Origin: Hyaloraphidium curvatum SAG 235-1
Taxonomy: Eukaryota > Fungi > Monoblepharomycota
DNA: 64,000 nucleotides
NCBI GenBank assembly: GCA_025558095.1
Contig: JAIVFI010000027.1
Coordinates: 62,001-126,000 of the forward strand
Reading direction: 5' to 3'
The notes under the pieces were generated by a model. That model saw only the letters and a list, made by a program, of their open reading frames with translations. It searched no databases and was not told where the DNA came from. The translations under genes were made by a program, and so were the position numbers. This document shows, piece after piece, positions 14,401-47,781 of this stretch; the stretch's first letter is position 1; each line of letters starts with the position of its first letter.

Positions 14401-14700
14401 CTACGGGGTCGGACACACGTTATCCATGCTGAATTTGATGCCCGCCCCCCGGACCAACGTCCACAAGCCCAAGGCGGCGGTAAGGGCCGTGACGGCAAAA
14501 GCCCGCGCGGCTCCGTAGTCGATCGCGAAGCCAAGCCACTTGCCCCTCGCCGAGGTCTCCCAGCAGGCCCAACAACGCCTCGTGGTCCGCCAACTGGGCA
14601 GTTCGCGCGTCCGCGTTGTGGGGGAGAAGCCGTAGCCATGCGGCCGCGGATCCCAAGTCCTCCGCATCCGTTCGGGGCTGATCTCTACGCCGATGCGCTC
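14401..14700 (-). pseudogene. 3' remnant (IL3 and TM7) of the 7-TM GRL-like family
   Basis: DHEALLGLL, then a frameshift, then RGKWLGFAIDYGAARAFAVTALTAALGLWTLVRGAGIKFSMDNVCP*. This matches the C-termini of the intact members at 20835 and 38874. Confidence 0.75.
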
Positions 14701-14830
14701 GGTCGGGGCTCAGATCATTAAAACCAACGCCAGTACGTTTAGGTCGCAGAGGCGGGCGTAAAGGCGTAGACCGTCCACAGAGCTGTACGTTCTCCAGGAT
14801 CATAATCAACGTTGACGAGCTCAACAAGTC

Positions 14831-15870
14831 CTACACCTTGACAAGCATCTTCCACCCCGCCACCGACATCCTCACCCACACCAGAAAACACACCCCAACC
14901 GCGTAGATGCACCCCGCCCACAGCTGGGCGTACAAGTAGCTCGCCGACACCTTCACCCCGTCGATGTACACGGCCCCGCGGTCCACCAGCGCCCCAAACA
15001 GCGGCGCGTTGCCGAAGAAGGCGAGTGAGAAGGCGACGTACAGCGTTCCGATGGCCACGGGGAACGCTTCGATGCGCGCAAAGAGCTTGGCGACGTTGGT
15101 CCCCACCAGACCAAAGAGCGGGCCCCAGAAGAGGCCCCAGCACACCGCGAACGCGTACAGCATGGCTTCGCTGGTCCCAGCCGGCACCCAGAGCGCAAAG
15201 ATGGACAGGGCGGTGAGCGCCTGCATCAGGCAGAGCAGGTTCAGCGACCCCGCCCGGTGCACGAGCGAGCCGACCACCACGGAGGAGAGCGAGCCAACGC
15301 CGCCGTTGATGGCGAGGAGGTTGGAGCCCATCTGCGGGCTCAGCTTCATGTCGTAGGCGTAGGAGGGGAGGAAGAAAGGGGAGGGGAAGGCCCAGGCGGC
15401 GAGGAAGAGGCCGAGGAAGAGGCGGAGGAAGAGCGAGTCCTTGAACAGGGCGACGGAGAAGAAGGGTCGTTTGGGGGTGTCCGGCGACGGTTTGGGCCGC
15501 GCCGAGAGGGGGATCCGGGGGCGGAAGATGATCGCGCAAAAGCCCATGACGGCCGCGTTGACGACAGCGTAGATGCGCAGGGTCCAAGCCGGGCCGAGGC
15601 TCGCGAGCATCCTTCCCGTCGCCAGGGACCACACCAGCCCGCCGATCCCGGTGCCGCTCATCGCCAGTCCGAATGCCAGGGGGAGCTTCTTTGCGAACCA
15701 CCCCGAGGGAGCGCTGGTGGCTCCGTTGCCCGCGAACGCGCAGCCGATCCCAAACACGACGCCCTGCGTGGCCAGCACCCCGCCGACCGACGTTGTGCAG
15801 ACGAACGACGCGGCGACATTGGCCGAGACCTGCAGCGCGGCCCCCAGGAGCAGCGAAGCACGCGACCCGC
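14831..15870 (-). CDS. MFS transporter, monocarboxylate (MCH/MCT) family; 5' end unresolved or truncated
   Basis: TQGVVFGIG, WFAKKLPLAFGLAMSGTGIGG, LGPAWTLRI and PFFLPSYA; about 9 hydrophobic helices visible; no clear start or first TM helices. Confidence 0.75.
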
Positions 15871-16553
15871 TCCCTGGCCGGGGGCAAAGCCGATAGTCAT
15901 ACGCCGACGAGGCTCACTCCATGCAGGATGCGTAACGATTTCACCATCCGTGGCCAACAAGCATGGGACATGTTGGGCTACAGGCGGCGGCGGTGCCGTT
16001 TGCTCGCGTCTCGCGTGACGGATGCCAAGACGGAGCCACGGATACCAAGACGGAGCCTGAAGGGAGCATGGAAAGTCAACGAGGCGATCCGAGTGAGCGC
16101 AACTTCGCAACACTCACGCTACTTCGCTGACAAGCTTCCACCAAAAATAAGAAAGCTAGGCAAGCTGCTTGATACGCAGGTTGTTTCCGTCACTTCTATG
16201 ATATGCAACTAGCTTTCGAGAACCGAGTGGCCCGAGCGCAGCAGCGCTGTAGAGTCGAGCGAAATGCACTACGGCGCGGAGCACCTGAACTGGGGCATGA
16301 CGGACGCGCTGCTTTGAGGCCGCGGGGACCTGCCCCTCGAAACTGCTGCAGATTCGACACGCGAACGTGGACGATTAGAACGCTTGTTGGCTGCTTTGGG
16401 GAGGTGGCGGGGCTGGAAATCAACACGGACCAGGTGGAGAAGAGTCTGGCGGCCGCCGTGAGCCCGACGATTGAGAAGCGGCGATCGAAGGCGCTCCGTC
16501 CCCCCGCATCGCGCCCGAAGCGCGTCCCACGCGCGCGCTACGCGGCCTCAGCG

Positions 16554-17066: not shown

Positions 17067-17085
17067 TATGCTGCCCCGCCTAGCG

Positions 17086-20834: not shown

Positions 20835-22343
20835 ATGGCATCGACCGACGCGCTGCCGGGCCGTTTTTCGCTCGACGCCTCGGGGCTGCTCGCTATTTTC
20901 CCCCTTCCGGTGCCTGGCAACGCTCCGCCGCCCTACCCACGTTCCCTCGGCCCCGGCGATGTCCGTTCCAAGCCCAACGATGTATTCGACACGTTGGCAG
21001 CAGGTGCTGCGCCCCTGACCCCGGTGGACGTGATTCGGCGGCTGGAGGATGCCGGCCTCAAGGCGCTGGCCATCCTGGTCCGCGCCTGCGGCACCCCCGC
21101 CGTCGCGCCCGGCCTGATCTCACTCTGCGGCATCGCGACAACCGCGTTGGTAATCGCCATCTCGGCCACGATGTTCCCGCTGAACGACGGATCCTTTGGT
21201 ACCGCGCAAATCGCGGTCGCAGTGGCGTCCGTGGGTGCACTTTTCTTGGGCGGCGCCTGCACCGTTGTCGTCGTTGTCTTCGCTCTTGCCGCGGCGCGCC
21301 GCGGTTCGTCGAACAGGCCTGCGTACAACGCCTGGTTCGCGGCGACTCTGACGCAGACTTGCCGGTGGTTGGAGCTTTGCGAGCCAGGGAGGGCAAGCAA
21401 GCTCGTGGAGCACGTCCCTGGGGATCAATACTGCACCTGCCGCGACTGCTGCGCTGGACTCCTTCGCTTGGCCGTCTGGGACCGCGTGGTTCGTCCCGGT
21501 CTCTTCCACACACTCGCCATCTTCATCTTTTTTGTCCCCCTCTGGACCCCGCTGGTGCGCTTCGGCCCGGTCTTTTGGTCCCGCTGGTACGGCATGGCCC
21601 TCGGCATTGCCTTTATCGTTGCTGAAATCGCGTGGAACCTCACGAGCGCGCTCACGCGGGTCTCGGCTTCCAGCACCGCGGACGTCCGCCTCCGCACGAG
21701 GATTTACCGCCGCGCGACCGACCTCGCGCTCCGCGATTTCCTCGCGCGAGCGCGTGCGGCGCTCCTCCACGGCACTGCGGTCGACGGTCCGGGCACTACG
21801 GAACTCTACGCCTCCCTGCATGCTGCCTACGAATCCCGCTGGCGTGCGGCACGTGCCGTCACGGCATTCTCCTCCAACGCCTTCACTACCATCATCTCAG
21901 TCCTCTACCCGCTCCTCCTGGTGGCCGGCGCCGTCGCCAACATCGCCGTGGGATCCTGCATCCCCCTGTGGCTCCTCCTCTTCCTGCTCCTCACCTTCGC
22001 GCTTCTCTTCATCGACCTCGCCCAGCTCCCCGCCGCCAACGACCAGATCGACGCCGTCCTCTCGCTCTACATCGACGCCCGTACCGCGCTCCAGTCCATG
22101 CTCGCCGAATCCGCGCGGCTGGGCACCAGAACCGCCGCGCGGGAGCTCAAGGAGCACCTTGGCCTGCTGGCGTCCTTTGGCGCCTCGGACAACCTGCGTG
22201 CGACGTTCGTTGGGATCGTGGTCACGTGGGGGCTTGCCAAGACCGCGGTGGTGACCGTAGTGACGCTGGCGGTGGCGCTGTGGAGCGTGCTCAGGGGGGT
22301 CGGCGTGGGGTTCACCGTCGAGACAGCGTGTCCTTTGGGTTGA
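20835..22343 (+). CDS. 7-TM membrane protein, GRL/7TM-ion-channel-like family (intact, intronless, 502 aa)
   Basis: Seven hydrophobic segments arranged as three hairpins plus a C-terminal TM; no signal peptide; loop motif LVEHVPGDQYCTCRDCCAG; C-terminus ATFVGIVVTWGLAKTAVVTVVTLAVALWSVL..ACP. Confidence 0.8.
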   Translation: MASTDALPGRFSLDASGLLAIFPLPVPGNAPPPYPRSLGPGDVRSKPNDVFDTLAAGAAPLTPVDVIRRLEDAGLKALAILVRACGTPAVAPGLISLCGIATTALVIAISATMFPLNDGSFGTAQIAVAVASVGALFLGGACTVVVVVFALAAARRGSSNRPAYNAWFAATLTQTCRWLELCEPGRASKLVEHVPGDQYCTCRDCCAGLLRLAVWDRVVRPGLFHTLAIFIFFVPLWTPLVRFGPVFWSRWYGMALGIAFIVAEIAWNLTSALTRVSASSTADVRLRTRIYRRATDLALRDFLARARAALLHGTAVDGPGTTELYASLHAAYESRWRAARAVTAFSSNAFTTIISVLYPLLLVAGAVANIAVGSCIPLWLLLFLLLTFALLFIDLAQLPAANDQIDAVLSLYIDARTALQSMLAESARLGTRTAARELKEHLGLLASFGASDNLRATFVGIVVTWGLAKTAVVTVVTLAVALWSVLRGVGVGFTVETACPLG

Positions 22344-22410
22344 GGTGCACAGCGGACGGTGGTTTATCGGAACGACCTTTGTATGCAGTGGACAAGATAC
22401 AGTTGCATCC

Positions 22411-23664
22411 CTAGGCAAGCTTGTTCGTCCCGCATACGTTCTTGTGCTCCTTCCACGCCGCGCGCTGGCACTCAGTTCCGCAGTACCTCGCCACGCCGCA
22501 CCGGGCGCAGCGCTTCAGCTTTCCGCCGGCGCCGCAGTTATCGCACATGTCCGCAACGGTTGTCGACAGTGTGCGCGAGAGTTTCTTGAGGAAGACCGGT
22601 ATTCCCGGATGGTGCTGATTCTCGTGCAGCCAAGATCCCACAGGCATGTTCGCCGCGACCGCTTGGGCGGCTTCCTTGCCCTTCGTAAGCACAGCGATCA
22701 TGACAGTGTTCCGGCACATTCGAAAAATGTCGCCGTTGCCAATGAATGGACCGGCAAGCGCGGCGGAGCCTTTTTCAAAAGTCTCGAAAGCCGTGGTCGC
22801 ACTTTCCATGATCGCCGTCCCTCGGCCTCCATTCAAGCTCTCTCCCAGCGTCTTTGCGTTCTGTCCGAGGATCGCCACCAACAAATCAGTTATCGTTGGA
22901 AGGAAGTCGTGCTTCTCGTCTCCCGTGGGCGAACGATCTCCGAAATCTCCACTCCTTTTCACAACCTCCCCGAAAACGGTCATGAGCGATATCAGCAGTC
23001 CGGTATCGTCCCCCAGCCTTTTCACCACAGCTTTGGAAGCAGAAGCAAGGATGAACAGGATGTCCACCGCTCTAATGCTGCAAACGGCGAAGGACATGGC
23101 GAAAGCCATGCGGACGACATCGCTCGCCGGGAGTGCTCTCGTCCAAGATGAGTTGCGCTCCGAATCGGCCAAGATGACAGCCGCGCGGCGTAGAATGTGG
23201 TACTCCGCCCGGAAAATGGTGAGAGCGAGCTCGGCCCGCAGCTTTGAAGGGCCGGCGTGCCGAGGAACTGGTCCGCCGCGGAACAAAGCCCTCTTCACAA
23301 GCAACCAATCGGAGCTCTGGTTCTCGTCCTCATTGGATGAGGAGCAGACAAACCAGCAAAGCTGATAGGTGTCCAGAAAGTCGTGCGGCAAAGGCGGTTC
23401 GGGAGAAGGTTCCGCAGGAGGACGGGACGCCGCAATATCGTCCAGGAAGGGGTAGTACGAAGCGGCGAAGGATTCCAGTAGTGTCGAGATCCGATATAAG
23501 AGAGCACTGTGGTCCAGCTTGGCCCAAGCGTCTCTGTTTTCGGCCCCCTCCCTGGGGTCGGCAACGGCGCCAGGCCCGGGCGCGGCTTCGCTCGAGAACG
23601 CCGCGCCCGACGGGACGACATCGACTCCGTCCACGGCGTCCTCCGGCGTGTTTTGCGAGTCCAT
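22411..23664 (-). CDS. MYND zinc-finger protein
   Basis: C-terminal CDNCG..LKRCARCGVARYCGTECQRAAWKEHKNVC. Confidence 0.85.
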   Translation of the reverse strand: MDSQNTPEDAVDGVDVVPSGAAFSSEAAPGPGAVADPREGAENRDAWAKLDHSALLYRISTLLESFAASYYPFLDDIAASRPPAEPSPEPPLPHDFLDTYQLCWFVCSSSNEDENQSSDWLLVKRALFRGGPVPRHAGPSKLRAELALTIFRAEYHILRRAAVILADSERNSSWTRALPASDVVRMAFAMSFAVCSIRAVDILFILASASKAVVKRLGDDTGLLISLMTVFGEVVKRSGDFGDRSPTGDEKHDFLPTITDLLVAILGQNAKTLGESLNGGRGTAIMESATTAFETFEKGSAALAGPFIGNGDIFRMCRNTVMIAVLTKGKEAAQAVAANMPVGSWLHENQHHPGIPVFLKKLSRTLSTTVADMCDNCGAGGKLKRCARCGVARYCGTECQRAAWKEHKNVCGTNKLA

Positions 23665-23945: not shown

Positions 23946-26088
23946 TCAGGCGGCGACGAGAGCCTCCGCGACGTTCTCCTCGCCCTCCTCGGCATCCCAG
24001 TCGAAGCCGTAGAGCGCCTCGGGCACGCCGTCGAACTCCTTCTCGGCCTCCCTCTCGATCTCGGCGAGCAGCTTGGGCGGGACGAGCACGTCGCCGACCA
24101 CGTGGACGACGCCGTTGGCCGCGGGGATGTCGGCGAACTTGACCGTCGTCTCGCCGTCGATCTTGATCTGGCACCGGGCGGGAAAAGGGTCAGCCCGAGG
24201 CGGCGAGCTGCGCGGGGACAGGATATACCCACGACCTTGCGGGTCTTGCCGCGCTCCTTCTCCTCCTCGACGGTCAGCGAGAGTTCCGTGCCGTCCAGCA
24301 TCCCGAGCTTGGCGGATCCGGCCTCGAACACGGGGGGCGAGTAGGCGAGGTTGGCCGAGACGTGATGCAGGAGGATCTTGCGGAGCTTGGTGAAGCCGAG
24401 TGGGCTGAGGAGGTACCGGAGCTTCTTGAATCCGAGCTGAAGAGGCGAGTCACGTCAGTATTGGGCGGGCGATGCATCATTGACGAGACGCAGACCTTCA
24501 TGAAGGCGCGGTCGGTCGGGGCAAACACGGTGATGGCCGACGAATGCACGAGGAGACCGGTGACTTCCGCACGTCGCACGGCTGCGGAGAAAAGATGGAA
24601 GAAGGGGAGGCGCGCGAGCTCGAAAACGACGGGTGCGGGGGGAATCAGAGGTCTGGTAAGCAGGGCGTGAGTTCGAAGACAACGCGGTGCAGTGCGGACG
24701 GAACTCACCCGCCAATCTCGTGGACCAAGCCGTTCGAGGCTTCGATGTCGGCGCGGCGGACCGGGGCACGGCAGTTGAGCAGGAAGACCTTGTCCTGTAG
24801 CGGAAGACCGTGAGCAAACGCATCCAACGCACCCGCGCGCTGCGGGCGAGACGTACCACAGACTCCTCGTCCTCGTCGTCGTCATCCTCACCGCCGAACG
24901 CGCAGACCTTGATCACCTGCTTGCCGCCCTTGAGGCTCTCGAGCTCCAGCGCCGTCTCGAGGAGCGAGCCGTCCTTGAGGTCCGAGGCCCCGACGGACTT
25001 GCCGAGCGCGTGGTAGAGCAGCGCCTTGTGGAGGAACTCCCTGCGGCGCTCGCTCTCGTTCTTGCCGTCGCCGAGCAGGTCCGAGAGCAGCGGGTCCTCG
25101 AAGGGCAGGGCCGGCACCGGGCCGGGGGGCCCGGGGGGACCGACGACGCCGGGAGGGCCGGGAGGACCGCGAGGAGGGAACGGGGGGCCGAGCGGAGGGC
25201 CTTCGATCGGGGGTCCAGGAGGGCCGGGCGGTCCAGGAGGCTCGAAGGGCGGGGCTCCGCCAGGGCCGTCAGGTGGGGCGGGCCTCTCCCACTCATCGCT
25301 GCTGACCACTTCGTCGCTGTCCTCGAACCAATCGGGCTTTCTTCCAGGGGGGCCGGGACGCTTGCCGAAGGGCGGGGGAGGGAACTTGCCAGGCCCACCT
25401 GGCGGCGGGGGCCCGTCGGGGGGTCCGCCAGGCCCGCGGGGAGGGCGAGGAGGTCCGCCGGGGCCGCCGTGCGGGGGAGGGGGGAACTTGCCAGGGCCGC
25501 CGGGAGGGGGGCCTCCGGGTCCACCGTGACCAGGAGGGCCGGGAGGACCGCCGTGACCAGGAGGGCCGCCGTGACCGGGAGGGCCGCCGTGACCGGGAGG
25601 ACCGCCGTGACCGGGAGGGCCGCCGTGACCGGGAGGGCCGCCGTGACCGGGAGGACCGCCGTGACCGGGAGGGCCGCCGTGACCGGGAGGACCGCCATGG
25701 CCAGGAGGACCACCGTGACCAGGAGGACCACCGCGGCCAGGAGGACCGCCGGGGCCGTGGGGGCCGTGCATCAGGATGCGGAGGATGGCGTCGTCGTTGG
25801 GGGCGAACAGGGTGAGCGGGCTGCGCAGTCCGTCAGCCCGACGCGGAACAATCGCGCCGCCGCGAGAACGCACCCGGGGCCGTCGAGCAGCTTCTTGACG
25901 TCCTCATCCTTGCCGACGATCTTGCCGAGGAGGTGCAGCTGCGGGTCGGTGTCGAGGATGCCGGCGACGGAGCGCGCGTCGGCCGCGGGGACTTCGAGGT
26001 CGGAACCGACGGTCTGCTGCGCGTACGGCAGCGCCCGCGCGACGCCGGCAAAGGCCAGCACCGCGAACGCGGCCACCGGGATGCGCAT
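23946..26088 (-). CDS. Secreted two-domain fasciclin (FAS1) protein with a Gly/Pro/His-rich insert; multi-exon
   Basis: Signal peptide; FAS1 motifs LTLFAPNDDAI, LLYHAL and DIEASNGLVHEI, then ITVFAPTDRAF, ILLHHV and DIPAANGVVHVVGDVL; several GT-AG introns; stop TGA at 23946. Confidence 0.85.
25548..25745 (-). repeat. 18-bp coding tandem repeat, 11 copies (PPGHGG x10, PPGRGG x1)
   Basis: Plus-strand unit ccgccgtgacc(a/g)ggagg(a/g) repeats with an 18-nt period. Confidence 0.95.
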
Positions 26089-29093: not shown

Positions 29094-29843
29094 ATGCGCC
29101 CAACGCGTCCAATCGTCCTCGCAGCGCTGCTGGCGGCCTTGTCCGCGGGCGCCGCCGCGCAGACCGCGTCCGCGCCCCTGCCGCTTCCCCTGAACACGAC
29201 CTTCGTCTTCGACCCTTCGCGGTTCCGCGATTTCTGCCAGGTGTACTACACGACGGTTCCCGCCAACACCTACAGGATCTTCGCCGTCTGCTCGGAGCCG
29301 GAGTGGGTCCCGCGGCACCTCCCCTCGTCTTGTCGCTCACGCCCGGCCTCCAGGTACGCGCTGGCCGCCACCTACCTCCCCTCGGAATCGATCCCCGCCT
29401 CCTCCCCGATCCCGAGCACCGTACCCTGCCACCTCCCGGAAGAAATCAGGAACGGCACGGAGCTGAAGTACCTCGCCGTCAGCTTCCCCACCGTCCCCGT
29501 CAACTCTAGCAGCACTGGGGGCATATGCCAGCGGCAGGACCAGTTCGCCGCCCCCTGCCGCACGACCAACGCGACGGTGTTCATCTCGTTCGCGTCCAGG
29601 TGGAACGCGACGTACAGCAACGGCAGCGCGGTGCCGGCGGACCTGTTCAACCCGGACTCGCCGCGCAACATCACGGTGAACCTGCTGCCGAGCCGGGAGC
29701 GGCCCGGGGAAGGGAATGCGACGGGATGCGCGGCGTTCGTGGCGACCACGACGACCAGGCCGGCGGCGGCGGGGAGGATGGCTGTCGGGTGGGCGGGGCT
29801 CGCAGCCGGCGCTGCGGCCGCGATCCTGGGCTTGACATCATGA
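29094..29843 (+). CDS. Secreted, probably GPI-anchored Cys-containing glycoprotein
   Basis: Signal peptide, many NxS/T sequons and a hydrophobic C-terminal tail after TTTTRPAAAG; probable in-frame intron ~29303-29353. Confidence 0.7.
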   Translation: MRPTRPIVLAALLAALSAGAAAQTASAPLPLPLNTTFVFDPSRFRDFCQVYYTTVPANTYRIFAVCSEPEWVPRHLPSSCRSRPASRYALAATYLPSESIPASSPIPSTVPCHLPEEIRNGTELKYLAVSFPTVPVNSSSTGGICQRQDQFAAPCRTTNATVFISFASRWNATYSNGSAVPADLFNPDSPRNITVNLLPSRERPGEGNATGCAAFVATTTTRPAAAGRMAVGWAGLAAGAAAAILGLTS

Positions 29844-30120
29844 GGATCCTGCAATCGCACCTGACGGCCGCCTGGCGCGGCCGCATCAACTGGTTCAACA
29901 CGGCCAGGGCCCACCTGCTCGCGCCAGCGGGCCTGCTCGACGCCGCGGGCGCCGACGCCGACCTGCTGGCGACGTATTTGGATGCGGATCGGTACACCGT
30001 CCGGTTCCTGGGGATCGTGGTGAGCTACGGGGTGATCAGGACGCTGCTGGTGACAATGGTGACACTCGCGGTGGCCCTCTTCTCGGTGCTGAATGGATTC
30101 GGGGTCACGGTGACGCTCTC
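29840..30120 (+). pseudogene. Internally deleted 3' remnant of the 7-TM GRL-like family
   Basis: LQSHLTAAWRGR (IL2 motif) is joined directly to LLATYLDADRYTVRFLGIVVSYGVIRTLLVTMVTLAVALFSVLNGFGVTVT. Confidence 0.75.
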
Positions 30121-30395
30121 TGGGGCGGGCAGGTGGACGGCGGACGTGAAACCCCATTCGCGTCGGGCTTCGAGGTCTGGGTCTGTAGAGGGTCCGTTCC
30201 GCGCGGCTCCGGATCCCAAGCGGCAGCCGATCAACCAATTTTCTAACAATGTTTATGGAAGTACGCCAGGCGGCAGCCGGTTAGCGTTGCGCAGATACAA
30301 GGTAGCAAAGTATGCTTAGCTGGCCGCGTCGCGCGTCGAGTCATCAACATCGACTCATCACCATCCACAACACCAACACTCGCGCTCCAGTCACG

Positions 30396-34478: not shown

Positions 34479-37022
34479 ATGGCGTCCCCGCTCCGGACCG
34501 CTTTCGGGGGTTCCTTCCGCTACGAAACCGGGATGCTGCTGTGCAAAAGGACGCTACGGACGTCTGCCGTGGCGCTGCCGGCGTGGGCCGTGGCTAGGAG
34601 GCCGTCCGGCGCCCACATTCCTGTCAGCCCGTTCGTGCTGCCAGCAATTGGCCGCCGACACGCCCACGCCGCGGCCACCGACGCGGTGCTCCTCGACGTC
34701 GGCGGCATGAAGTGCGCCGGCTGCGCCGCCAACGTAAAGAAGGCGCTCGCCGCCGACGACCGCGTGGCGTCGGCGACCGTCAACCTTCTGACGCACACCG
34801 CGGCCGTCCGACTCAAGGGCGGCACCGCCGACGCCGCATCGGCGCTCGCCAAACTGCTCACGGCCCGCGGCTACCCGGCGACGGTACGGAAGCCGGACGA
34901 CGACCCGTTCCTCGCCCCCGCCGAATCCTCCCCCGAAGCGGACCGACGCAACCGCCGGGACCTCGCCCTCGCCTGGCTGCTTGCCGGCACCGTCGGCCTG
35001 CACCACGCCGGCCACCTGCTCTCCGCCCTGGGCTTCCCCTCCCTCGCCCATTCCCCACTCCTGCACGCCCTGGGCACACCCCTCGTCTCCGGGGCCGTCG
35101 GGCTCGCCGCGCTGCTCGGCCCCGGCCGCACCATCCTCCTCTCGGGCTTCCGCGCGCTCCGCCGCCGCGAGCCGGACATGGACTCCCTCGTCGCGCTCGG
35201 AACGGGCGGCAGCTTCCTCGCCGGCGCCGCGTCGATGCTGGCCCCCGCGGGGTCGCCCTTGGCGGGGCTGGCCGGGGACGCGCCGTCGTTCCTTGGGGAG
35301 CCGGCGATGCTTCTCGCGGCGGTGCTGCTCGGCCGCGCTTTGGAATCCCGCGCCCGCGCGCGTGCCGCGGCCGACCTCGGCTCCTTGGCCGCGCTCGTGC
35401 CCGCCCGCGCGAGGATCGTGCTCGACCCCGCGGATCCGAGCGCGGTGGTCGACGTTCCTGCGGGGGAGGTCCGCGAGGGTGATGCGGTGCGCGTGCTACC
35501 CGGGGAACGCATACCCGTCGACGGCATTGTGCTGTCTGGCAAGGGCTCTGCGGACGAATCGGTGCTCACCGGCGAACCCGCGGCGGTACCCAAACCCCCC
35601 GGTGCCAAGGTGTCCGCGGGCACGGTGGCCTGGGGCGCACCGATGGACGTCAGAGCGGAGAGGGCGGGCAGGGCGACGCAGCTGGCCGGGATCGCGAGGC
35701 TCGTGAGGGAAGCGCAGGCGAGGGAGGCGCCGGTCCAACGGCTGGCGGATTGGGCGGCGGGGAGGTTCTGCGCGGGGGTGATGGCTGCCGCGGCGGCGAC
35801 GTTCGGGTTCTGGAGCACGCTCGGCGCGGCGTGGTTCCCGGCCGCCGCCGGGGGCGCCGCGCTTTCGGGCCCGGCGCTGGCGACGGCGGCAAAGCTCGCG
35901 ATCGGGGTGCTCGTCGTCGCGTGCCCGTGCGCGCTGGGGCTGGCGACGCCCGCGGCGGTGCTGGTGGCGTCGGGGGCGGCGGCGAGGAGGGGTTTGCTGT
36001 TGCGGGGGGGAGGGGAGGCTGTGGAGAGGTTGGGGGGTGTGGATGCGGTGGCGCTGGACAAGACGGGGACGCTGACGGAGGGGAGGCTGGCGGTCGTGCG
36101 GATCGAGGCGGTGGGGCACGTGCGGGAGGAGGAGATGCTGGCTCTCGCGGCGGCCGCGGAGTCGACGACCAAGCACCCGCTCGCCGAGGCCATTGTGGCG
36201 GCAGCGCGGGACAGAGGCTTGGACGTGCCGGCCGCGATCCACGCCGAGGCGTCGACCGAGACGGGCGCGGGGCTCGCAGCTTCCATCAACCGCGGTGGGG
36301 AGGTGGCCGAGGTGCTCGTCGGCAGGCGGGATTGGGTGCTTTCCAAGCTCGGGATCGCTGATGAGGGACGCGGGCAAGTCGGCGAGCAGGACGACGTGGG
36401 ACACACCGAGGTCTTTGTGGCCGCGGCCGGCCGCCCCCTCGGCACCATCTTCCTCGCGGACCGGCTCCGCAGCGACGCGGCATCGACCGTCGCGGCCCTC
36501 CGCGCCATGGGCATCCGCCTCGCCATGCTCTCTGGCGACCGCCCCGCCGCCGCCCTCGCAGTTGGCACTGCCGCCGGTCTACTCCCCCATGAAATCACCG
36601 GCGGCCTCACCCCCGACGGCAAGCTCCGCGCTATCGAGTCATTGCGCTTCCAAGGCCTCAAGGTGGCCATGGTCGGGGATGGGGCCAACGACGCCCCCGC
36701 GTTGGCCGCCGCGGACGTCGGGATCGCGCTCCGCGGCGGGCTGGACGCGGCGGGGAGCGCGGCGGACGTGGTGCTCGGGGACAGGCTGGGCCAGGTGGCC
36801 GAGGCGGTGGTGCTGGGGCGCAAGACGATGGGCACGATCCGGGGCAATTTGGCGTGGGCGCTGGGGTACAACCTGGTCGGGATTCCCGTGGCGGCGGGGG
36901 CGCTGCTGCCGGCGTACGGCGTGGTGCTGCCGCCGAGCGTCGCGGGGGGTTTCATGGCGGCGTCGTCGCTGGCCGTGATGGCGAACAGCCTGCTTCTCAA
37001 GTGGAGGTTGGGGGGACGCTGA
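34479..37022 (+). CDS. Cu(+)-transporting P1B-type ATPase, PAA1/PAA2/CtaA-like, intronless
   Basis: Single MBD GMKCAGC; LTGEP, VACPCALGLATP, DKTGTLT, HP, MVGDGANDAPALA, YN and MAASS. Confidence 0.95.
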   Translation: MASPLRTAFGGSFRYETGMLLCKRTLRTSAVALPAWAVARRPSGAHIPVSPFVLPAIGRRHAHAAATDAVLLDVGGMKCAGCAANVKKALAADDRVASATVNLLTHTAAVRLKGGTADAASALAKLLTARGYPATVRKPDDDPFLAPAESSPEADRRNRRDLALAWLLAGTVGLHHAGHLLSALGFPSLAHSPLLHALGTPLVSGAVGLAALLGPGRTILLSGFRALRRREPDMDSLVALGTGGSFLAGAASMLAPAGSPLAGLAGDAPSFLGEPAMLLAAVLLGRALESRARARAAADLGSLAALVPARARIVLDPADPSAVVDVPAGEVREGDAVRVLPGERIPVDGIVLSGKGSADESVLTGEPAAVPKPPGAKVSAGTVAWGAPMDVRAERAGRATQLAGIARLVREAQAREAPVQRLADWAAGRFCAGVMAAAAATFGFWSTLGAAWFPAAAGGAALSGPALATAAKLAIGVLVVACPCALGLATPAAVLVASGAAARRGLLLRGGGEAVERLGGVDAVALDKTGTLTEGRLAVVRIEAVGHVREEEMLALAAAAESTTKHPLAEAIVAAARDRGLDVPAAIHAEASTETGAGLAASINRGGEVAEVLVGRRDWVLSKLGIADEGRGQVGEQDDVGHTEVFVAAAGRPLGTIFLADRLRSDAASTVAALRAMGIRLAMLSGDRPAAALAVGTAAGLLPHEITGGLTPDGKLRAIESLRFQGLKVAMVGDGANDAPALAAADVGIALRGGLDAAGSAADVVLGDRLGQVAEAVVLGRKTMGTIRGNLAWALGYNLVGIPVAAGALLPAYGVVLPPSVAGGFMAASSLAVMANSLLLKWRLGGR

Positions 37023-38873: not shown

Positions 38874-40376
38874 TCAAGCCGGGCACACGGACTGTATCGT
38901 CACGCCCACCCCCGCGCCCCGCAGGATCCCGAACAGACCCACCCCCAGCGTCAGCCCCGTCGCCACCAGCCCCCTGACCACGCCCCAATCCACCACGAAC
39001 CCGAACATCCGCGCCAGATCCGCCCTTGCAGCGGCGTCGAACCGAGCCAGCACCTCGGCGTGGGCCCTCCACCGCGGCGCGTCGTGGTGGTCCGGCTCTC
39101 GGGCGGCGCACAGTGAGAGCTGGGTCCGGGCGCGTGAATACAGCTCCGCGATTCGGGAGACGCCGGCGTTGGCGGAGACCACCGTCACGACGACGCGCAG
39201 GAAGAAGAACACGCTGATGGCGAGTGTGCCCAGGACGTAACCAGGGAGGCAGCCGGCCGCGACCATGGAGACGCAGCCGACCAGCACGACCATCCCGACC
39301 ATGGCGGCACTGACGGAGGACGAGGTGGCTACGTTGTGGCCGAGGGTGCGCCACGCAGGTAGAAGGGAGGAGTGCAGGGGGACGTAGGGCTCTTCCTTGG
39401 GCCAGGGGATGTTTTGGGCGTCGTCCAGGGAGAGGTAGCACCTGCGAAGCAGGTCCGAGAGGGCGAGAGAAACAGCCCGAGAGCGAAGGCGGGCCTGCAG
39501 GGCGAGGAGCGCGGGGTCGCTCGATAATGCGTCCATGGCGATGCTGCAAATGGAAAAGGTGTGGTAGGCGAGCACCCAGGCAGCCAGGAGAGCACGCCAT
39601 GGGGAGTTCCACGTAATGCTGCCAAAGTAGACCATAGCGGTCCAGAACTGGAGCGGAGCCCAGATAAATAAGCCAGATGAAGCATGGAGGAAAACCGAAG
39701 TGGCCTGGAGCCACGCCGACCGGCGGACGAGAGATCCGGAGCATGATTCCGCGGGGCAGGTGCACGCGTCGTCTCCAGGGTCGTGCCTTACCAGCGGGTC
39801 TGTGCCGCCGCCCAAGCCGAGCTCGGTTGCGTCCCCGCCGGGCAACCGCAGTTGCCCTTCGCTTCCACAGAGTTGTCTCCACCTCGCGTAGCACGCGAAC
39901 GCGTGCTGATCGGGAAACTTGAGCAGTGCATGAGCGGCATTTGTTGTCATACGGGCCAGGAAGGCAGAGGGTAGCTCGAGAGCGAGGAAGACGGTTAGGC
40001 CAGTCACGATTCCCCTCGTGTTGAAGTCGCCCGAGTCCATTGCGACGGGCCACAGCGTGCAGGCAAAGAGTGCGAAACGGGGTGCCGAGTATAGCAAGAA
40101 GCGGGCGATTACGTTGCCATTGATCCCCGGGTTGTTCCACTCGACCGCCAGCAGCGCGCGGTGGACGGGCGAGCCCGCGAACGCGCGTGCCAGCCCGTCC
40201 CGGGTCAGCGACGACGCCTCACGCGCTTCCTTTGCGGGGTCGCTTTCAGCGAACCCGGGCGGGGCCCCGGTAGGGGCCGCAGAGGGCCTGGTGGCCCCCG
40301 GGAGCAGGCAGAGCCACGCGGCCGCGCTCAGGAACGGGCCGGCGGCCACCCGATCCGCGTGGTTGGTGGGGAACAT
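38874..40376 (-). CDS. 7-TM membrane protein, GRL/7TM-ion-channel-like family (intact, intronless, ~500 aa)
   Basis: Seven hydrophobic segments; loop motif LVRHDPGDDACTCPAESCSG; GCLPGY between TM5 and TM6; C-terminus ARMFGFVVDWGVVRGLVATGLTLGVGLFGILRG..SVCPA. Confidence 0.8.
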   Translation of the reverse strand: MFPTNHADRVAAGPFLSAAAWLCLLPGATRPSAAPTGAPPGFAESDPAKEAREASSLTRDGLARAFAGSPVHRALLAVEWNNPGINGNVIARFLLYSAPRFALFACTLWPVAMDSGDFNTRGIVTGLTVFLALELPSAFLARMTTNAAHALLKFPDQHAFACYARWRQLCGSEGQLRLPGGDATELGLGGGTDPLVRHDPGDDACTCPAESCSGSLVRRSAWLQATSVFLHASSGLFIWAPLQFWTAMVYFGSITWNSPWRALLAAWVLAYHTFSICSIAMDALSSDPALLALQARLRSRAVSLALSDLLRRCYLSLDDAQNIPWPKEEPYVPLHSSLLPAWRTLGHNVATSSSVSAAMVGMVVLVGCVSMVAAGCLPGYVLGTLAISVFFFLRVVVTVVSANAGVSRIAELYSRARTQLSLCAAREPDHHDAPRWRAHAEVLARFDAAARADLARMFGFVVDWGVVRGLVATGLTLGVGLFGILRGAGVGVTIQSVCPA

Positions 40377-40949
40377 GGCCGTCGCGTTGTTGGGCAATGA
40401 AGCGGATGTGAGGCCCGGCATTTATTTCTAGCGGAGTGTGGAGCATGCAGTGTTGCCTCGGGATCCAGGGGATTCCCGCCCCAGGCCGTGGCTCGTTACC
40501 CCCGCATCGCCCTCGGAGTCACTAGCTCGGATGCTAGTGAGGTCGATCGTAGTTTGATTATTCTCTCCTGATTCAAATAGCAATTCACGTTTGTCGGGCT
40601 CCGGCCGCCGCGCGAAATGGCCGAGTCCGCTCAACAGCAACCCTCTTACCGCCTCAACGGGCACCCTCTGCACGTCTCCGTGACCCCAAACCCGTCCGGC
40701 ACCGGACATAGCACTGCGGGGCGCGTTCACCAGCGTCATTGGCTGCGTCGCGATGCCCGGCTTGCTCGGAAACCGGGCCGCACCCGTGCCCATCCACGTA
40801 GCTCTCGCACGGAGCCTCCGATCCTCCAATCAGGCCCCTGCGTGCAGTTGCACTCCGTTCGGGGGCCCCGGGAGGCCGAGGGTGCAAACGGCCGGGCCTG
40901 TCGCTTCCGCAGGGCGCAACGACCCGCCACCGCAACGGCGCACCGCGGC

Positions 40950-42143
40950 CTAGGTCCTCGACTGCATGACGCAGATGGTCGTAATCACCACGATCGCAAC
41001 GACGAACTCGGTGGCCAGCGCCACGGTGTTCCAGAACCGGATGCTCTTGATGACCTCCTTCTCCTTGACCTTGTTCTTCCTGAGCTCCGCCTTGCGCGTG
41101 CGCTTCTCGTCCTCGTCCATGAGCTCCTCCTCCTCCCTGTGCGCTTCCTTCTCGTCCGCGCGGAACTCGAGGATCCGGTTGTTGTCCCAGACCACGAGAC
41201 CGAAGGTGGAGATGATCAGGAGGTAGCAGAAGACGTAGATCTCGTCCATCAGCGTGAGCCCCGAGATGACGAGGTTGGTTTGTTGCAGAAAGACGGCCGT
41301 GAGGAGCGCGGTGGCGCTCATGGCCGTGCGCACCTCGACGTACTTGGGGTGCAGCACGAGCGAGAACCACGAGGAGATGACGACGAGGCAGAGCGGGAGG
41401 AGCAGCCGCCAGATGAAGAAGTTCTGCCCGCGCTCGATGACCAGCGAGAAGCGCACGGCCGAGTACTCCTCGTCCTCGGGCGCGCCCGTGACCCCGAAGT
41501 TGCTCTCGTAGTCGTGGATCATGGTCTCGGCCTGCAGGTCCACGAGGTTCCAGCCGGGGACCACCAGGAGCGCGTCCAGCCCCGATTCGGCAAAGTCGGG
41601 GACGTACACGATGTGGTCCCGCTGGTGCACCGAATCCTCGACGTTGAGCGTGAGCCGCTGCTGGTCCAGCGGGAAGTTGCGCAGGTCGAAAGGCTGGTAC
41701 ATCAGGCCCTGGATGTGCAGCTCCTGCACGAGCATGCCGTCGGCGGCGACCGTGGGCTGCTCCGTGACCTTCTGCACGGTAAAGTCGACGTCCTGGACGC
41801 CGTTGTTGATCTCGAGCGATTTTATCGGGTCGTAGTCCGTCCCGTTGGGCCAGCGGAACCAGAGGTAGCCCGTGAGCCAGTACGTGTTTTTCGAAGTGTC
41901 GAGGTCGTAGGCGTTCATGGCGTAGAACCCGACCGAGACGACGGTCGCGTTACCCGGCGGGGCGGTCTCGGGGCGGTAGTAGCCCGGGACGGGGGCGCGC
42001 CCGGATTGGGTGCGGCGCGGGCGGCACGCGGCGCACCGCGACGCCCCGTTGAAGCGCGCGAGGCCGGCGGCGGCCGCGGGGAGCAGGCTGAGCGCGGCGA
42101 CGGCGAGGCCGAGCAGCAGGAGCGCGGGGAGGCGGCGGCGCAT
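40950..42143 (-). CDS. Pentameric ligand-gated ion channel subunit, Cys-less Pro-loop type (GLIC/ELIC-like), intronless
   Basis: Signal peptide; VSVGFY..YDLD..YLWFRW; Pro-loop FDLRNFPLDQQRL; VPGW; pre-M1 IER and M1 LLLP; M2 EVRTAMSATALLT; M3 LTLMD; M4. Confidence 0.92.
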   Translation of the reverse strand: MRRRLPALLLLGLAVAALSLLPAAAAGLARFNGASRCAACRPRRTQSGRAPVPGYYRPETAPPGNATVVSVGFYAMNAYDLDTSKNTYWLTGYLWFRWPNGTDYDPIKSLEINNGVQDVDFTVQKVTEQPTVAADGMLVQELHIQGLMYQPFDLRNFPLDQQRLTLNVEDSVHQRDHIVYVPDFAESGLDALLVVPGWNLVDLQAETMIHDYESNFGVTGAPEDEEYSAVRFSLVIERGQNFFIWRLLLPLCLVVISSWFSLVLHPKYVEVRTAMSATALLTAVFLQQTNLVISGLTLMDEIYVFCYLLIISTFGLVVWDNNRILEFRADEKEAHREEEELMDEDEKRTRKAELRKNKVKEKEVIKSIRFWNTVALATEFVVAIVVITTICVMQSRT

Positions 42144-42462
42144 GGCGGGGTGCGCTGGAGGGAGGGAAGGAGTGTGGGGACTCTGAGGACCTTTTGCCGC
42201 TGACGGGCGCCACTTACGATCCTCATCAAGCACGAGGACGACGCACCTCTCGCCGCCGCGGGAGGCTGCTCTAATGCCCTTCGAGCTAAGGAATCTTGCG
42301 ACATGCCTTGAATCCGCCCGCGGCGCGGTTTCTCTGCCCTGCCTTCACGGGAGCGCCCAATCCAGACCGGTGCCGGAAGTCCGAAGCGGGCCGTCTTTTC
42401 TCCCCCATCAGGCGGAGCTGCGATCGCCCGGGTATCACATCCGGCCCCGAGCCGCCGATCCA

Positions 42463-43839
42463 TTACCCCGCCGCCCCTCCCACCTGCCCAGCGAGCGGCA
42501 CCAAAGTGCCGGCTGCGATGACCACCGCGAGCGCCAGCAGGGCGCGGAACGCCTCCGGGCGGTTGGACGCCTTGCGGCGCAGGACGGCGGCGGCGGCGAG
42601 GCACTGCGCGAGAAGCACGAGGAGGGGGAGGAAAAGGCCGCTGTCGGCGGCGATCGCGCCGAGGGCAGGAAAGGATGCGCCCTGGGCGGAGGCGTCGCCC
42701 CCTGCGGCATGGCCCGCAAGTTCCGAACCCCCTGCGGCCGGACTGCCGCCGGCAAGCCGCACCACCTGCTCCCAATGCGCGTCCAGCTTCTCCCGCGCGG
42801 CCCGCGGCGGTCCCCTCCCCTTCTCCCCAAGCAACCCCGGGAGAGCCTCCAGCGCCCTCCCCCAGCTTCCGACCACCTCGTCCCGCCTGCCCATCTGCCC
42901 CGCCTGCCCCTCGAACTTGTGCAGGTACGGCACGGCGACGAGGCGCGCGGGGACACCGTACGCGGCGGCGGTGATGTGCCCGTGCAGCGACGAGGTGAGG
43001 ACGGCGGAGGAAGAGGCGATCGCGGCCGCGATGTCCTCGAGCGCGGGGGGGTCGTCGAAGGGGATGGTGCGGAGGGGGGCGGCGGCGTGAATGGCGCGCA
43101 CGGTGTGGTGGTCGCCATGGCATCGGCCCAGAGCGAGGAGGATCGCGCGGGCGCCCGAGGCGGCGAGCGCCGCGTCGAGGGCGACGGCGAAGGAGGTCGC
43201 GTTCGTACCGTGCAGGCTCCGCTCCTTGGCGTGCACGGCGACGATCGGTCCGTCGCCGACGAGCCCGAGCCGCCCGCGGATGGCCTCCCAGCGCGCCGCC
43301 AGCCTTGCTGCGGGCCAGACCAGGGGCAGGTCCAGCGCCGTGTCGGGCATCACCTGCGGCCGGATCCCGGCCCATTTCTCGAACGCGTCGGCACTCCCGG
43401 CATCGCGCACCGCCAGCCTCGCCGCGGCATCCGCCGTGCGGCGCACCCAATCCGCAGGCGGGCCCGTCCCGGCGCCGTCGGGTGCCAGCACGCCCGGCGA
43501 GTTCCAAGCCACGGGCAGCCCCGTCCGCGCCGCCATCTCCGTCGCGCCGGCCCACAGGTCCCGGTACGCCCGCGGGCCGTAGCCCGGCAGCCCGAAATCC
43601 AGCGCGTGCACGATGTTGCCGCCGCCGACCAGCACCGCCGCCAGCCCCTCCCGCGGGCGGAACCCGGCCTGCGCCTCCGGGCGCGGCGCGTCGTCGTACC
43701 CCGCGCGGCGGCCGGTGGGCGACACCGCGACGGGGGCGATGCCGTGCGGCGCGAGCCGCGCCGCGGCGACGAGGGGGAACAGCAAATCCCCGTAGTTCTC
43801 GACGTCGAAGGTGCCGAAGATGGCCACGGTGCGGGGCAT
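42463..43839 (-). CDS. Polysaccharide pyruvyltransferase family protein with two C-terminal hydrophobic helices, intronless
   Basis: FGTFDVENYGDLLFP, VLVGGGNIV, VAWNSPG, LAVRDAGS, MPDTA and TSSLHGHITAAAYGVP. Confidence 0.88.
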   Translation of the reverse strand: MPRTVAIFGTFDVENYGDLLFPLVAAARLAPHGIAPVAVSPTGRRAGYDDAPRPEAQAGFRPREGLAAVLVGGGNIVHALDFGLPGYGPRAYRDLWAGATEMAARTGLPVAWNSPGVLAPDGAGTGPPADWVRRTADAAARLAVRDAGSADAFEKWAGIRPQVMPDTALDLPLVWPAARLAARWEAIRGRLGLVGDGPIVAVHAKERSLHGTNATSFAVALDAALAASGARAILLALGRCHGDHHTVRAIHAAAPLRTIPFDDPPALEDIAAAIASSSAVLTSSLHGHITAAAYGVPARLVAVPYLHKFEGQAGQMGRRDEVVGSWGRALEALPGLLGEKGRGPPRAAREKLDAHWEQVVRLAGGSPAAGGSELAGHAAGGDASAQGASFPALGAIAADSGLFLPLLVLLAQCLAAAAVLRRKASNRPEAFRALLALAVVIAAGTLVPLAGQVGGAAG

Positions 43840-44288
43840 CGCGGGCGCCGCGCTGCAATCACGAGGTCCGGCGGCGCGATCCGTGCCGGATGGCGCAAGA
43901 GAAGTGACGAGGGAGGAGGAGTCCCGCCGTCCCGCCGCCCGAACCCCCTGGCTGGGCCCGATGCGTCCCTCGACTCGATCCCCTGAAATTGAGCCCGCCG
44001 GACTTGGGGCCGGCAGACGTTTCCGTAGCACCACGGCATCGGTGCATCGGATCCGCACGTGCCGTGCGGTAGGCGGTTGCCGGTGTGGTATCGCAAGGGG
44101 CACCGGAAGGACACGCCGCGGGAGGATCCGCTCACGGAAACCCGAGCCTCCGAGAACGACACTGCCTTCAGGCTCATCCGGATTGACGGTCCTGCCGCGG
44201 TCCGAGCCAGGCTTCCGTCGATCATGCCGTCGCCATGGGGCCCAAGCTCGACCCAAGGGATTCGGCATCCGCCTTCAATAGCTCTCAA

Positions 44289-45763
44289 ATGTCGTTCACT
44301 CCGGACGAGTGGTTCCTCTTGGTGCCGCTACCGCCTCAGGGCAACGTGTTTACCTCAGGTTCGCCCGACGACGGCGCGGCCGAGGCCCGCGCGGCCCGCC
44401 CTCTGACTCGCGCCGAGCTCCTCCGCTGGACGCGCGGCAGCGGCCTGCTGCACGCGCTGCTGCGCGCGCAATTGGAGCTCGGCCCGTGGACGGGGCGCGT
44501 GCTCCTGCGCATGTTGCTCGTGATCGCCGTGTCGATGGTGCTGCTCGTGCCGCTGTGGACGCTCAACGCGGGGCGCTTCGGCTTCCGGCAGCTTGTGGCC
44601 GGCACCGTCGCCGCCGCGCTGTTCAATGCCCTGACGCTGGCCACGTGGGCGATCGCCGCCACCTTCCGGGGCTCCTATCTGCAGTGGAAGCAGGCACCCG
44701 CCGGCCCCGCAACCCGAGATCCCGCCGCGGCGGACGCCTGCGCTCACCCGTTCGCCCCGCTGGCGCTCTGGGCCCGGCTCGCTTCCTCCGAATCGGCCCC
44801 CTCCGACTTGCTCAAGGCCCCTGACCGCGATCCGACGCGCACAGCTGCCCTCCTGGAGCACAGGGACGACGACCCGCTCTGCCCCTGCCCCAACCCCGCG
44901 TGTTCCGGCACCGCCCTGGCGCGGGCCGCCGCCGTGCGGCTGCTCGAGATGCTCGCGCGGATCGCCGTGTCCGCCGCATTCACCGTCTGCGTTGCCTGGA
45001 CGCCCATGGTCACCTTTGCCGCCGATTTCTGGACGAGCGGCTGGGCGGCGGCGGGGGCATTGCTCGGTGCGTTCCCCCCGGAGCCGTTGCTGCCGCCGTG
45101 CTTGACCCGCCCGCCCGCCAGTCGTCTCGTTCGTCAACGCCGTCGTGGTGAGCAGCATCGGCCGCTTCGGCACCAACGTCGCCGTCCTCCGCCTCGCGCT
45201 CCGCGTGCAGGCACCGCGCCGCCACCTCCGCCCTGCGCCGGCTGCTCGACCGGCTTCGGGCCGGTGCGCCGCCTCCCCACGGGGAGGAGGAACTCTACGT
45301 CCGGCTCCACGCCGCGCTGCGGACCACCTGGGAGAAGCAGTTCACCGCCGCGCTGATGACCTCGGGCGGCTACCTCGCCGGCGCCGTCTTTTCGTGCTTC
45401 CTCGCCATCGTCATCAACCTGGTGCATGCGTCACCCGCATCCCATTCTTGTTCCTTGCTGACGACGTTCGCAGATCGGCGGCTCCTGCGTCCCCGCCTAC
45501 ATCCTCTTCCACCTCCTCGGCACCCTCCTCATCCTCCTCATCGACCTGGTCAACATCGCCGCCTCCATAGGCCAGCTGGCGCAGGTGGTCGCGCTGTACG
45601 GCCTCGCGCGGCAGGAACTCCTGTTCACCGTGGCGATCGTGCTCTGGGGTGGGTCGCCGCGTTCCGCACGCCCCCCCAGGGAGGTGCTGACGCTCTGTTT
45701 GGCAGGATCATGCGGGGGTCGGGGATATTCGTCACGCCGGACGTCGCCTGCCCGTTCTATTGA
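44289..45763 (+). pseudogene. 7-TM GRL-like family member with three introns, a frameshift and an internal deletion
   Basis: Loop motif LLEHRDDDPLCPCPNPACSG; WTP; GSCVPAY..LIDL; ends ACPFY*. Introns ~45067-45121, ~45422-45473 and ~45649-45705; +1 shift at ~45211; IL3/TM7a missing at ~45620. Confidence 0.72.
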
Positions 45764-46791
45764 CCCGCTGCTGCGGTAAAAGAATCCCCGCCATCTTCCC
45801 GCGGCCCTCCCCTCTTCTCGACGTACACGAACCTCCCCACCGCCCCGTCGTCCTGGCCCAGGCTGTACGTCGCGAGCCCCAATCCGTCCGCGGCCTCGTG
45901 CAGCCGCTTCCTCTCCTTCGAGTAGAGCCCGTGCACGGGGCCAAAGAGCTTCAGGTTTCCGTCGGCGAGGAAGCCGGACAGCAGGCGGGCGTAGTCCTCG
46001 GCCGTCGTCCTTTTCGCGAATGCGGACCGCTCGAAGTTGGGCAAATCGGAGTCGCGGGGGTCCCGCAGAGTCTCGATGACGCTGTCCAGGTCGCGCCGTT
46101 GGGGGCGGAGGACAAAATCGGAAGGGCGGGAGTTGCCGGTCTCGCGGGCCTCGCGGAGCTGCGCACCAGTCAGCGTCGCGGGAAGGAGAGCCGTGACAGC
46201 GAAACGCACCTTGGAAACCGGCACGGATTCCTCCGCCATACTCTCAAGAAGCATCTCCCACCTTTCCGCCACCGTCGTCCTCGGCATCGCCACCCGCGGG
46301 AACGGCCCCGGATCCTGCCCCAGGCACACCCGCAGCGCGGCGTCCAGAACGCGCAGCCAGTCCTTCCGAGCTTCGAGCTGCCGCAGCAGCATGAATCTGC
46401 CCGATTCGAACTCGCCCAGTGCGTCGAGCACGTCGAGCGGGGCCGAGGGGGGGCGGGAGGGGAAGCGGGTCATGGTTGGGCCGGCGGGTTCGTCGGCGAG
46501 GCGTTCGCGCACGCGGCGGAGGACGCGCATGAACGAGGCGCGGGAGCAGCCTTTCAGGTCGTCTTGCGTCACGGCGCCCGCAAAGGCCGATTCGTCGAGC
46601 GGCACGCCGCGGTAGCCGGGCAGCGCGTCCGCGACGCATTCCGGCGCGTCCGCCGTCGCGGCGCGCCACATCGGCGAAAGGTCCGCCGGGAGGCCCTCCC
46701 GCTCGACAAAGATTTCAAAGGCCACCGCAGAACGGAGACAATGGGCCAGGTGCGGGGCCACCAGCTCCGCCAGCAGCGCGAGGCGATCCAT
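45757..46791 (-). CDS. Hypothetical protein with C-terminal R3H domain
   Basis: LYSKERKRLHEAADGLGLATYSLG..GRFVYVEK fits the R-x3-H pattern. Confidence 0.72.
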   Translation of the reverse strand: MDRLALLAELVAPHLAHCLRSAVAFEIFVEREGLPADLSPMWRAATADAPECVADALPGYRGVPLDESAFAGAVTQDDLKGCSRASFMRVLRRVRERLADEPAGPTMTRFPSRPPSAPLDVLDALGEFESGRFMLLRQLEARKDWLRVLDAALRVCLGQDPGPFPRVAMPRTTVAERWEMLLESMAEESVPVSKVRFAVTALLPATLTGAQLREARETGNSRPSDFVLRPQRRDLDSVIETLRDPRDSDLPNFERSAFAKRTTAEDYARLLSGFLADGNLKLFGPVHGLYSKERKRLHEAADGLGLATYSLGQDDGAVGRFVYVEKRGGPREDGGDSFTAAAGQ

Positions 46792-46905
46792 GTTGTTTAC
46801 CGAAGTCAAGGGATTTGGCCGCGCAAATTCCTGCCCATCGATCCGCGCGCGTTTCGCGAACTGCCAGGCCTCCCATCCGCCTCATTGCCCGGCAACGCCA
46901 CGGCG

Positions 46906-47781
46906 ATGTCTGGGGCCGACCAGGTCGATCGGGTGGCCGCCGGCCCGTTCCTCAGCGCGACCGCGTGGCTCTGCCTTCTCCCCGGGGCCACCAAGCCCTC
47001 TGCGGCCCCCGAAGGCGCGCCGCCCGGGTTCGCGGAAACCGACCCCGCGAAGGAAGCACGTGAGGCATTGCCGCTGACCCGGGCCGAGCTCGCACGCGCG
47101 TTCGCGGGCTCGCCCGTCCACCGCGCGCTGCTGGCGGTTGAGGGGCACAACCCGGGGATCAACGGCAACATTTTCGTCCGCTTCGTTACTTATTCGGCAC
47201 CCCGTGTCGTGCTCTTCGCCTGCACGCTGTGGCCCGTCGCCGTGGACTCGGGCGAGTTCATCAAGAGGGGAATCGTGACTGGCTTTAGCCTGTACACCGC
47301 TTTCGAGCTCGCATTCGCCATCCTGGCCCCCGTGACGACAAAGGCCACGCAAGCATTGCGACATGTTCCGGACGAGCATCCTTTTGCGTGCTATGCAAGG
47401 TGGAGGCAGCTCTACGAGGAGGGGGCAGGGCAACCGTCGTGCCCTACTGCGGACGGAACCGAACTCGGGCCTGGCGGCGGCACAGATCCCCTCGTGCGGC
47501 ACGACCCTCTGGATGACACGTGCACATGCCCCGCGGCGGCATGCTCCCGGTCCCTGGTCGACCGCTCGCCCGACGCGCCGCGGTGGAGGGCCCACGCCGA
47601 GGTGCTGGCGCGCTTCGAAGCTGCGGCGCGGGCGGATCTGGCGCGGATGTTCGGGTTCGCGGTGGATTGGGGCGTGGTCAGGGGGCTGCTGGCGACGGGG
47701 CTGACGCTGGGGGTGGGTCTGTTCGGGATCCTGCGGGGCGCGGGGGTGGGCGTGACGATACAGTCCGTGTGCCCGGCGTGA
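46906..47781 (+). pseudogene. Inverted paralog of 38874-40376 with an in-frame ~627-nt internal deletion (291 aa ORF)
   Basis: Near-identical N- and C-termini (DRVAAGPFLSA.AWLCLLPGAT; MFGF.VDWGVVRGL..SVCPA); the junction SLVDRS/PDAPRW at ~47568 removes TM3-TM6. Confidence 0.85.

Follow-up and report, generated by a model that had tools for sequence, protein, structure and literature searches.

The 64-kb stretch of Hyaloraphidium curvatum DNA analysed here (the window; part of contig C27 of a 31.9-Mb assembly in 55 contigs) carries six loci of a gene family whose products very probably share both fold and ancestry with the seven-transmembrane ion channels (7TMICs), to which the odorant receptors (ORs) of insects and their gustatory receptors (GRs) belong. 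The host is a small aquatic, non-motile (non-swimming) fungus, an ally of the Monoblepharidomycetes without flagellum or rhizoids (PMC6899921), and the family proteins are deposited as H. curvatum hypothetical proteins. All six loci of the original prediction, made from the sequence alone, were recovered in place by tblastn with both intact proteins and by a 64-member family hidden Markov model (HMM), and no others rose above noise. Both genes that had been read as intact, designated members A and B (Table 1), are open throughout and share 26% identity. The closest paralog of member A, on contig C42, is 59% identical at the amino acid level with a ratio of nonsynonymous to synonymous substitution rates (dN/dS) of 0.38, and an in-frame ATG upstream at 40421 would lengthen member B to 515 amino acids.

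Hydropathy and two AlphaFold models, of member A (predicted local distance difference test score, pLDDT, 89.6) and of another family member (107-row alignment, protein B being one row), agreed with the predicted seven hydrophobic segments and their alternating short and long loops. The median loop lengths from TM1-2 to TM6-7 are 11/70/9/72/4/72 amino acids, that is, extracellular loops of 11, 9 and 4 against intracellular loops of about 70, 72 and 72, the arrangement of 7TMICs. The positive-inside count and the same-order structural match described below would place the N-terminus inside the cell and the C-terminus outside.

Conservation reaches its maximum at the hairpin and TM7b, where it had been expected, but the consensus first given for this last helix was biased towards the copies in the window; the family-wide form is R-(A/G)-(R/K/T)-h-h-G(100%)-(F/V/I)-x-V-x-(Y/F/W)-G-x-x-R-x-h-h-V-T-x-x-T(98%)-h-x-h-(G/A)-L-W-(S/G/T)-(V/I/L)-L-R-G-x-G, with the TM7b arginine R487 kept in 90%. 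The GR motif (T/S)Yhhhhh(Q/K/E)(F/L/M) is reduced to its threonine, as had been noted: T is retained in 98%, while Y is replaced by L/V, Q by S/G/T and F by V/I/L. Counting from T477, V/I/L485 comes eight residues later and is preceded by S/G/T at 484; the GR motif has the same spacing. Two further features escaped the original prediction or were given no place in it. The TM2-3 loop (intracellular loop 1, about 60-70 amino acids) holds an H-x3-D-x2-C-x-C-x2/4-C motif, in which H193 and C205 are invariant and the remaining positions 95-98% conserved among 64 members, the histidine and all three cysteines being invariant among 107; this invariance suggests a zinc or redox site. Moreover, C375 (100%) and C499 (97-99%) form a conserved pair. 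Since the two residues are extracellular and each model has a beta-strand at the C375 site and in the C-tail, TM5/6 and the pore helix are likely, judging from the models, to be joined by a disulfide.

Table 1 Family loci in the window and features of member A (TM, transmembrane segment)
Feature	Position	Strand	Description
3' remnant	14401..14604	-	TM7a (frameshifted), hairpin, TM7b, C-tail; E 2.5e-20
Member A	20835..22343	+	Intact, intronless, 502 aa; 7TMIC fold in model
His/Asp/Cys3 motif of member A (H193, D197, C200, C202, C205)	21411..21449	+	Intracellular loop 1; putative Zn/redox site
C375 of member A	21957..21959	+	Short extracellular TM5-TM6 loop; putative disulfide partner of C499
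TM7a (432-449), beta-hairpin (~453-464), pore helix TM7b (465-488) of member A	22128..22298	+	T477, S484, V485, R487 in TM7b
C499 of member A	22329..22331	+	Extracellular C-terminal 'CP' tail
3' remnant	29840..30127	+	TM6 end, TM7a, hairpin, TM7b; without final CP; match ~29900-30120, E 1.5e-23
Member B	38874..40376	-	Intact, intronless, 500 aa; protein-collection entry P0038 starts at 40376
Pseudogene of intron-bearing member	44289..45763	+	Introns, frameshift, codon loss
Internally deleted local duplicate of B, inverted orientation	46906..47781	+	In-frame 627-nt loss (TM3-TM6) at 47568/47571

For both models, the best matches among all solved structures were insect OR, GR and Orco structures. 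The match extended over the full length with the helices in the same order, and it was obtained for seven OR/GR representatives, at a root-mean-square deviation of 5-6 Å, a TM-score under 0.5 and 6-14% identity. The long anchor helices TM4-TM6 were found at 251-312, 324-373 and 378-426 in the model of member A and likewise in the second model, and TM7 is split in both (helix 432-449, two short strands and helix 465-488; helix 442-458, strands and helix 475-498, respectively). Helices at 63-85 fall within the range aligned to OR/GR N-termini, the site of the re-entrant TM0 in 7TMICs. The alignment of member A to Orco ends at 486 to 474, an end point that presumably lies in the register of the GR motif, other alignments being shifted by one to three residues. 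Unrelated matches (MukF, syntaxins) covered the anchor bundle only. A G protein-coupled receptor (GPCR), opsin or PAQR identity was rejected, as neither such a helix bundle nor any other seven-helix family appeared among the best 50 matches of each search.

What weighs against this assignment is the silence of the sequence profiles: the family HMM matched nothing among PDB sequences and Pfam, including 7tm_7, 7tm_6 and DUF3537 (PF12056), and gave no link to a named family, and word-based protein searches returned only H. curvatum and one metagenome protein. Scans of the genome itself for 7tm_7 and DUF3537 were blank, but the controls were also silent, so these are uninformative; scans of metagenome and viral contigs were blank at low sensitivity, one of them missing its own contig. 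A weak sequence connection is also found in 33 of the 2421 accepted 7TMICs. As no link to GRs was seen in the sequences, the case for homology is built on fold, topology and the pattern of conservation, and the caution originally attached to it holds. The family agrees with 7TMICs in structure and departs from GRs and GR-like proteins (GRLs) in motif, Pfam matches and introns, and is best classed as a new lineage within the 7TMICs and not as GRs.

The window holds only a small part of the family. A DNA pattern for H-x3-D-x2-C-x-C occurred 435 times genome-wide against 40 for the reversed control; 26 of the 32 matches checked on contigs C1-C2 were family genes, and the exact motif is present in 89% of members, which together put the number of loci with the motif at about 400-440, remnants excluded. 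Independently of that count, 1.84 billion proteins searched with the profile yielded 474 clusters (50% identity), 317 of them at E up to 1e-30, and 19 of the 20 clusters sampled from the top 150 came from H. curvatum. The copies are dispersed over most contigs, many are intronless, and paralogs are mostly 25-45% identical (median nearest-neighbour identity, 39%). In the unbiased sample used for gene structure (contig C1 and part of C2), 15 of the 18 C1 loci examined are full-length once introns are allowed and 3 look broken. The proposed lineage-specific expansion thus stood, at a size far above the six loci first seen, but turnover is milder than the copies in the window imply. Introns occur in 12 of these 18 loci, mostly at two shared sites, at the TM4 start (phase 1) and the TM5 end (phase 0), and the intron before TM7 that marks GRs and GRLs was found in none of the 18. 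The FastTree phylogeny, whose deep branches are weak, mixes genes with introns among genes without them, which points to repeated intron loss. Elsewhere (L007, G000:C22:199797-203342), a family gene has its 3' half on one strand and its 5' half on the other, which suggests that a local inversion took place.

Purifying selection acts on the family: dN/dS was 0.24-0.48 in all 28 paralog pairs above 55% identity. When 12 independent pairs were pooled, the region of hairpin, TM7b and tail had the lowest value (0.11), followed by the anchor (0.24) and the Cys loop (0.26); the parts of TM1-6 within the membrane gave 0.34-0.45. This profile is the one described for 7TMICs, with conserved pore and anchor and a divergent pocket (10.1101/2023.08.30.555482). 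One relative was found outside Hyaloraphidium, a metagenome protein from a 54% GC contig that groups inside the subfamily of one H. curvatum paralog, with which it shares 53% identity; judged by its sequence it may come from an unsampled relative of Hyaloraphidium, and from this one sequence the expansion would have begun before that split. It was located at L071:237-1208 and L092:593-1219 (JGI 3300043314, run ERR4869805) and adjoins an SNF2-like gene.

The damaged loci of the window show duplication and decay. Both predicted 3' remnants were matched by the family HMM, and since their nearest paralogs lie on other contigs (69% amino acid identity, contig C29, for 14401-14604; 57% for 29840-30127), they arrived from elsewhere and are not fragments of neighbours. 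The two loci read as disrupted are indeed both broken, but two of the breaks in 44289-45763 are not damage, because they match the intron sites of intact paralogs: they are GT-AG introns at 45067-45121 (phase 1) and 45422-45473 (phase 0), with a probable third at 45649-45705. Decay as the explanation for every frame break was rejected on this ground. The locus is a pseudogene all the same, owing to a 1-nt frameshift near 45210 and the loss of about 55 codons near 45620, from the TM6 end to the TM7b start; an 89-nt intron absorbing the frameshift was rejected because it would remove a family-like TM4 start. The locus at 46906-47781 is sister to member B in the tree (support 1.0), with DNA identity of 80% on the 5' side of the break and 95% on the 3' side, the latter part probably reflecting recent conversion or duplication; B and this duplicate have no flanks in common.

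Family members are probably ion channels, and whether they sense outside chemicals is, by analogy with insect receptors, evenly balanced; the term chemoreceptor channel is itself used here by that analogy. We lean slightly towards a repertoire of tetrameric, ligand-gated, OR/GR-like channels for outside chemicals. In GRs, the pore is lined by four S7b helices, its closed gate is formed by F in TYhhhhhQF, and the ligand is bound in an S1-S6 pocket with the signal relayed through S5 (PMC12635824). By the same scheme, four subunits would join via the cytoplasmic TM4-TM5-TM6-TM7a anchor, their TM7b helices would line the pore, and a small molecule in the paralog-specific TM1-TM6 pocket would open the gate, giving an ion or calcium signal. 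For the gate itself we propose V/I/L485, preceded by S/T/G484, the two standing where GRs have 'QF'; it would be hydrophobic, lack the glutamine switch and be followed by the conserved Arg. A C375-C499 disulfide might fasten the TM5-6 loop to the pore helix at its end, coupling the GR-type ligand-sensing helix to the gate, and the His/Cys3 cluster of intracellular loop 1 may be a site of metal binding or redox chemistry. The fullest version, an insect-sized repertoire of several hundred differently tuned ligand-gated 7TMICs, built independently of animals in a non-motile fungus, with a novel metal/redox site in the cytoplasm and a pore helix latched by a disulfide, is offered tentatively, at slightly under an even chance.

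Proteins of this fold could also do other work. They might not be ligand-gated channels but internal-membrane or metal/redox-regulated proteins with a role of the PHTF-like Class B/TMEM39 type, in which the His/Cys loop would be central. The greater length of the first intracellular loop and its invariant metal-type motif, a vertebrate TMEM39B cluster scoring 0.93 in both feature searches, the missing polar Q at the gate and the conserved Arg at the pore mouth are all in keeping with such a role; constraint, however, is highest on the pore helix and hairpin and lowest on the pocket helices, and hundreds of divergent paralogs suit many ligands better than one housekeeping job, so that we consider it unlikely. 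The same gating machine might instead serve recognition of non-self or danger (parasites, bacteria, other strains) and trigger defence or cell death. Expanded fungal immune-receptor (NLR-type) repertoires are large birth-and-death families, and a large, dispersed family of this kind in a non-motile cell resembles them, but dN/dS stays steady in whole genes with no region above 0.45 (gene and region averages) and no repeat-type ligand-binding domain is fused to the proteins, which leaves non-self recognition quite unlikely.

Convergence on a seven-helix fold without kinship to 7TMICs would account for the absent sequence similarity, the large deviations and the low TM-scores; it is improbable given the full-length, same-order match to seven representatives in two models, the split TM7 with its hairpin and the confinement of unrelated matches to the anchor bundle. 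Selfish or neutral amplification, as transposon cargo or repeats without host function, is very improbable and largely refuted by the selection data. Dispersed, often intronless copies and 3' remnants such as retrocopies leave would fit it, but dN/dS is well below 1 in 28 of 28 close pairs, about 80% of copies are intact, introns recur at shared sites, nearest neighbours are mostly distant, B and its duplicate lack common flanks, and an orthologous-looking member exists in another organism; transposon cargo was rejected on dN/dS, intactness, shared introns and the absence of common flanks.

Among the neighbouring genes, an open reading frame directly upstream of member B (40950-42233, minus strand) resembles a Cys-less pentameric ligand-gated ion channel, with a GLIC/ELIC-like FP-x-D loop and four C-terminal hydrophobic helices (Pfam blank at 1e-3); such a channel would be unusual among fungi and would set another channel of sensor type beside the family. 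The two family genes in inverted orientation enclose a bacterial-type polysaccharide pyruvyl transferase (42463-43845, minus; PF04230, E 4.6e-15), and a Gly/Pro/His tandem repeat of GGPPGH units (24900-25770, minus) lies within a secreted fasciclin-like gene. A MYND-finger protein (22411-23661, minus), a major facilitator superfamily transporter (14831-15778, minus) and a heavy-metal P-type ATPase identified by eye (34479-37022, plus) are ordinary neighbours.

By predicted structure only, the closest proteins are unannotated ESM Atlas clusters: two cnidarian ones of 395 and 502 amino acids (TM-scores 0.58/0.72 and 0.53/0.53) and one dominated by giant viruses (Nucleocytoviricota; 313 amino acids, 0.47/0.68, with 0.68 by target). 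Uncharacterised giant-virus proteins in BFVD (Edafosvirus A0A3G4ZRZ0, Catovirus A0A1V0SCD1, Yasminevirus, Faunusvirus) reached a Foldseek probability of up to 1.0, and these matches are possibly viral proteins of 7TMIC fold, as far as models indicate. By language-model features, plant DUF3537, PHTF-like Class B and TMEM39 (PF10271) proteins lie near the family (0.90-0.93); they too have lost the motif, and Class B also has a long first intracellular loop, but they show no HMM match and number 1-12 genes. The TMEM39B cluster stood among 7TMIC-type clusters in the ESM Atlas, and clusters of hypothetical ciliate membrane proteins scored 0.95. No publication was found linking TMEM39 to 7TMICs, or naming or describing the present family, and the text of the 2023 7TMIC screen makes no mention of H. 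curvatum.

Since the family is annotated as hypothetical and escapes Pfam, comparable repertoires may hide in other genomes. The family also bears on what 7TMICs do outside insects: many of its members have no introns and lend themselves to expression, which makes the question of an ancestral ligand-gated sensor directly testable. The nearest solved structures are MhOR5 (7lic), AgamOR28 (8v3c), AaegOR10 (8v00), BmGr9 (8uvu), DmGr43a (8jm9) and Orco (6c70); compared with insect ORs and GRs, the family has TYhhhhhQF cut to T-(L/V)-hhhhW-(S/G/T)-(V/I/L), about 100 more amino acids, the His/Cys loop, a Cys-ended C-tail and shared introns elsewhere. The GRLs of Spizellomyces, which were not among the top profile matches inspected, nor were those of protists, resemble it as unicellular 7TMICs keeping only one of four motif positions. 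The original prediction spoke of a few copies in chytrids, but the published fungal GRLs amount to one gene, GRL1, in each of Spizellomyces punctatus and S. palustris, and the protist repertoires do not exceed six per species (Thecamonas; Vitrella GRL1-6) (PMC7746228). Compared by description, about 400 genes here thus stand against one per chytrid and at most six per protist; so many paralogs kept by purifying selection within a single fungus show a second expansion of the fold, in a cell without neurons and without a flagellum, and, if the proposed function is true, this would be the first large repertoire of chemoreceptor channels known outside animals.
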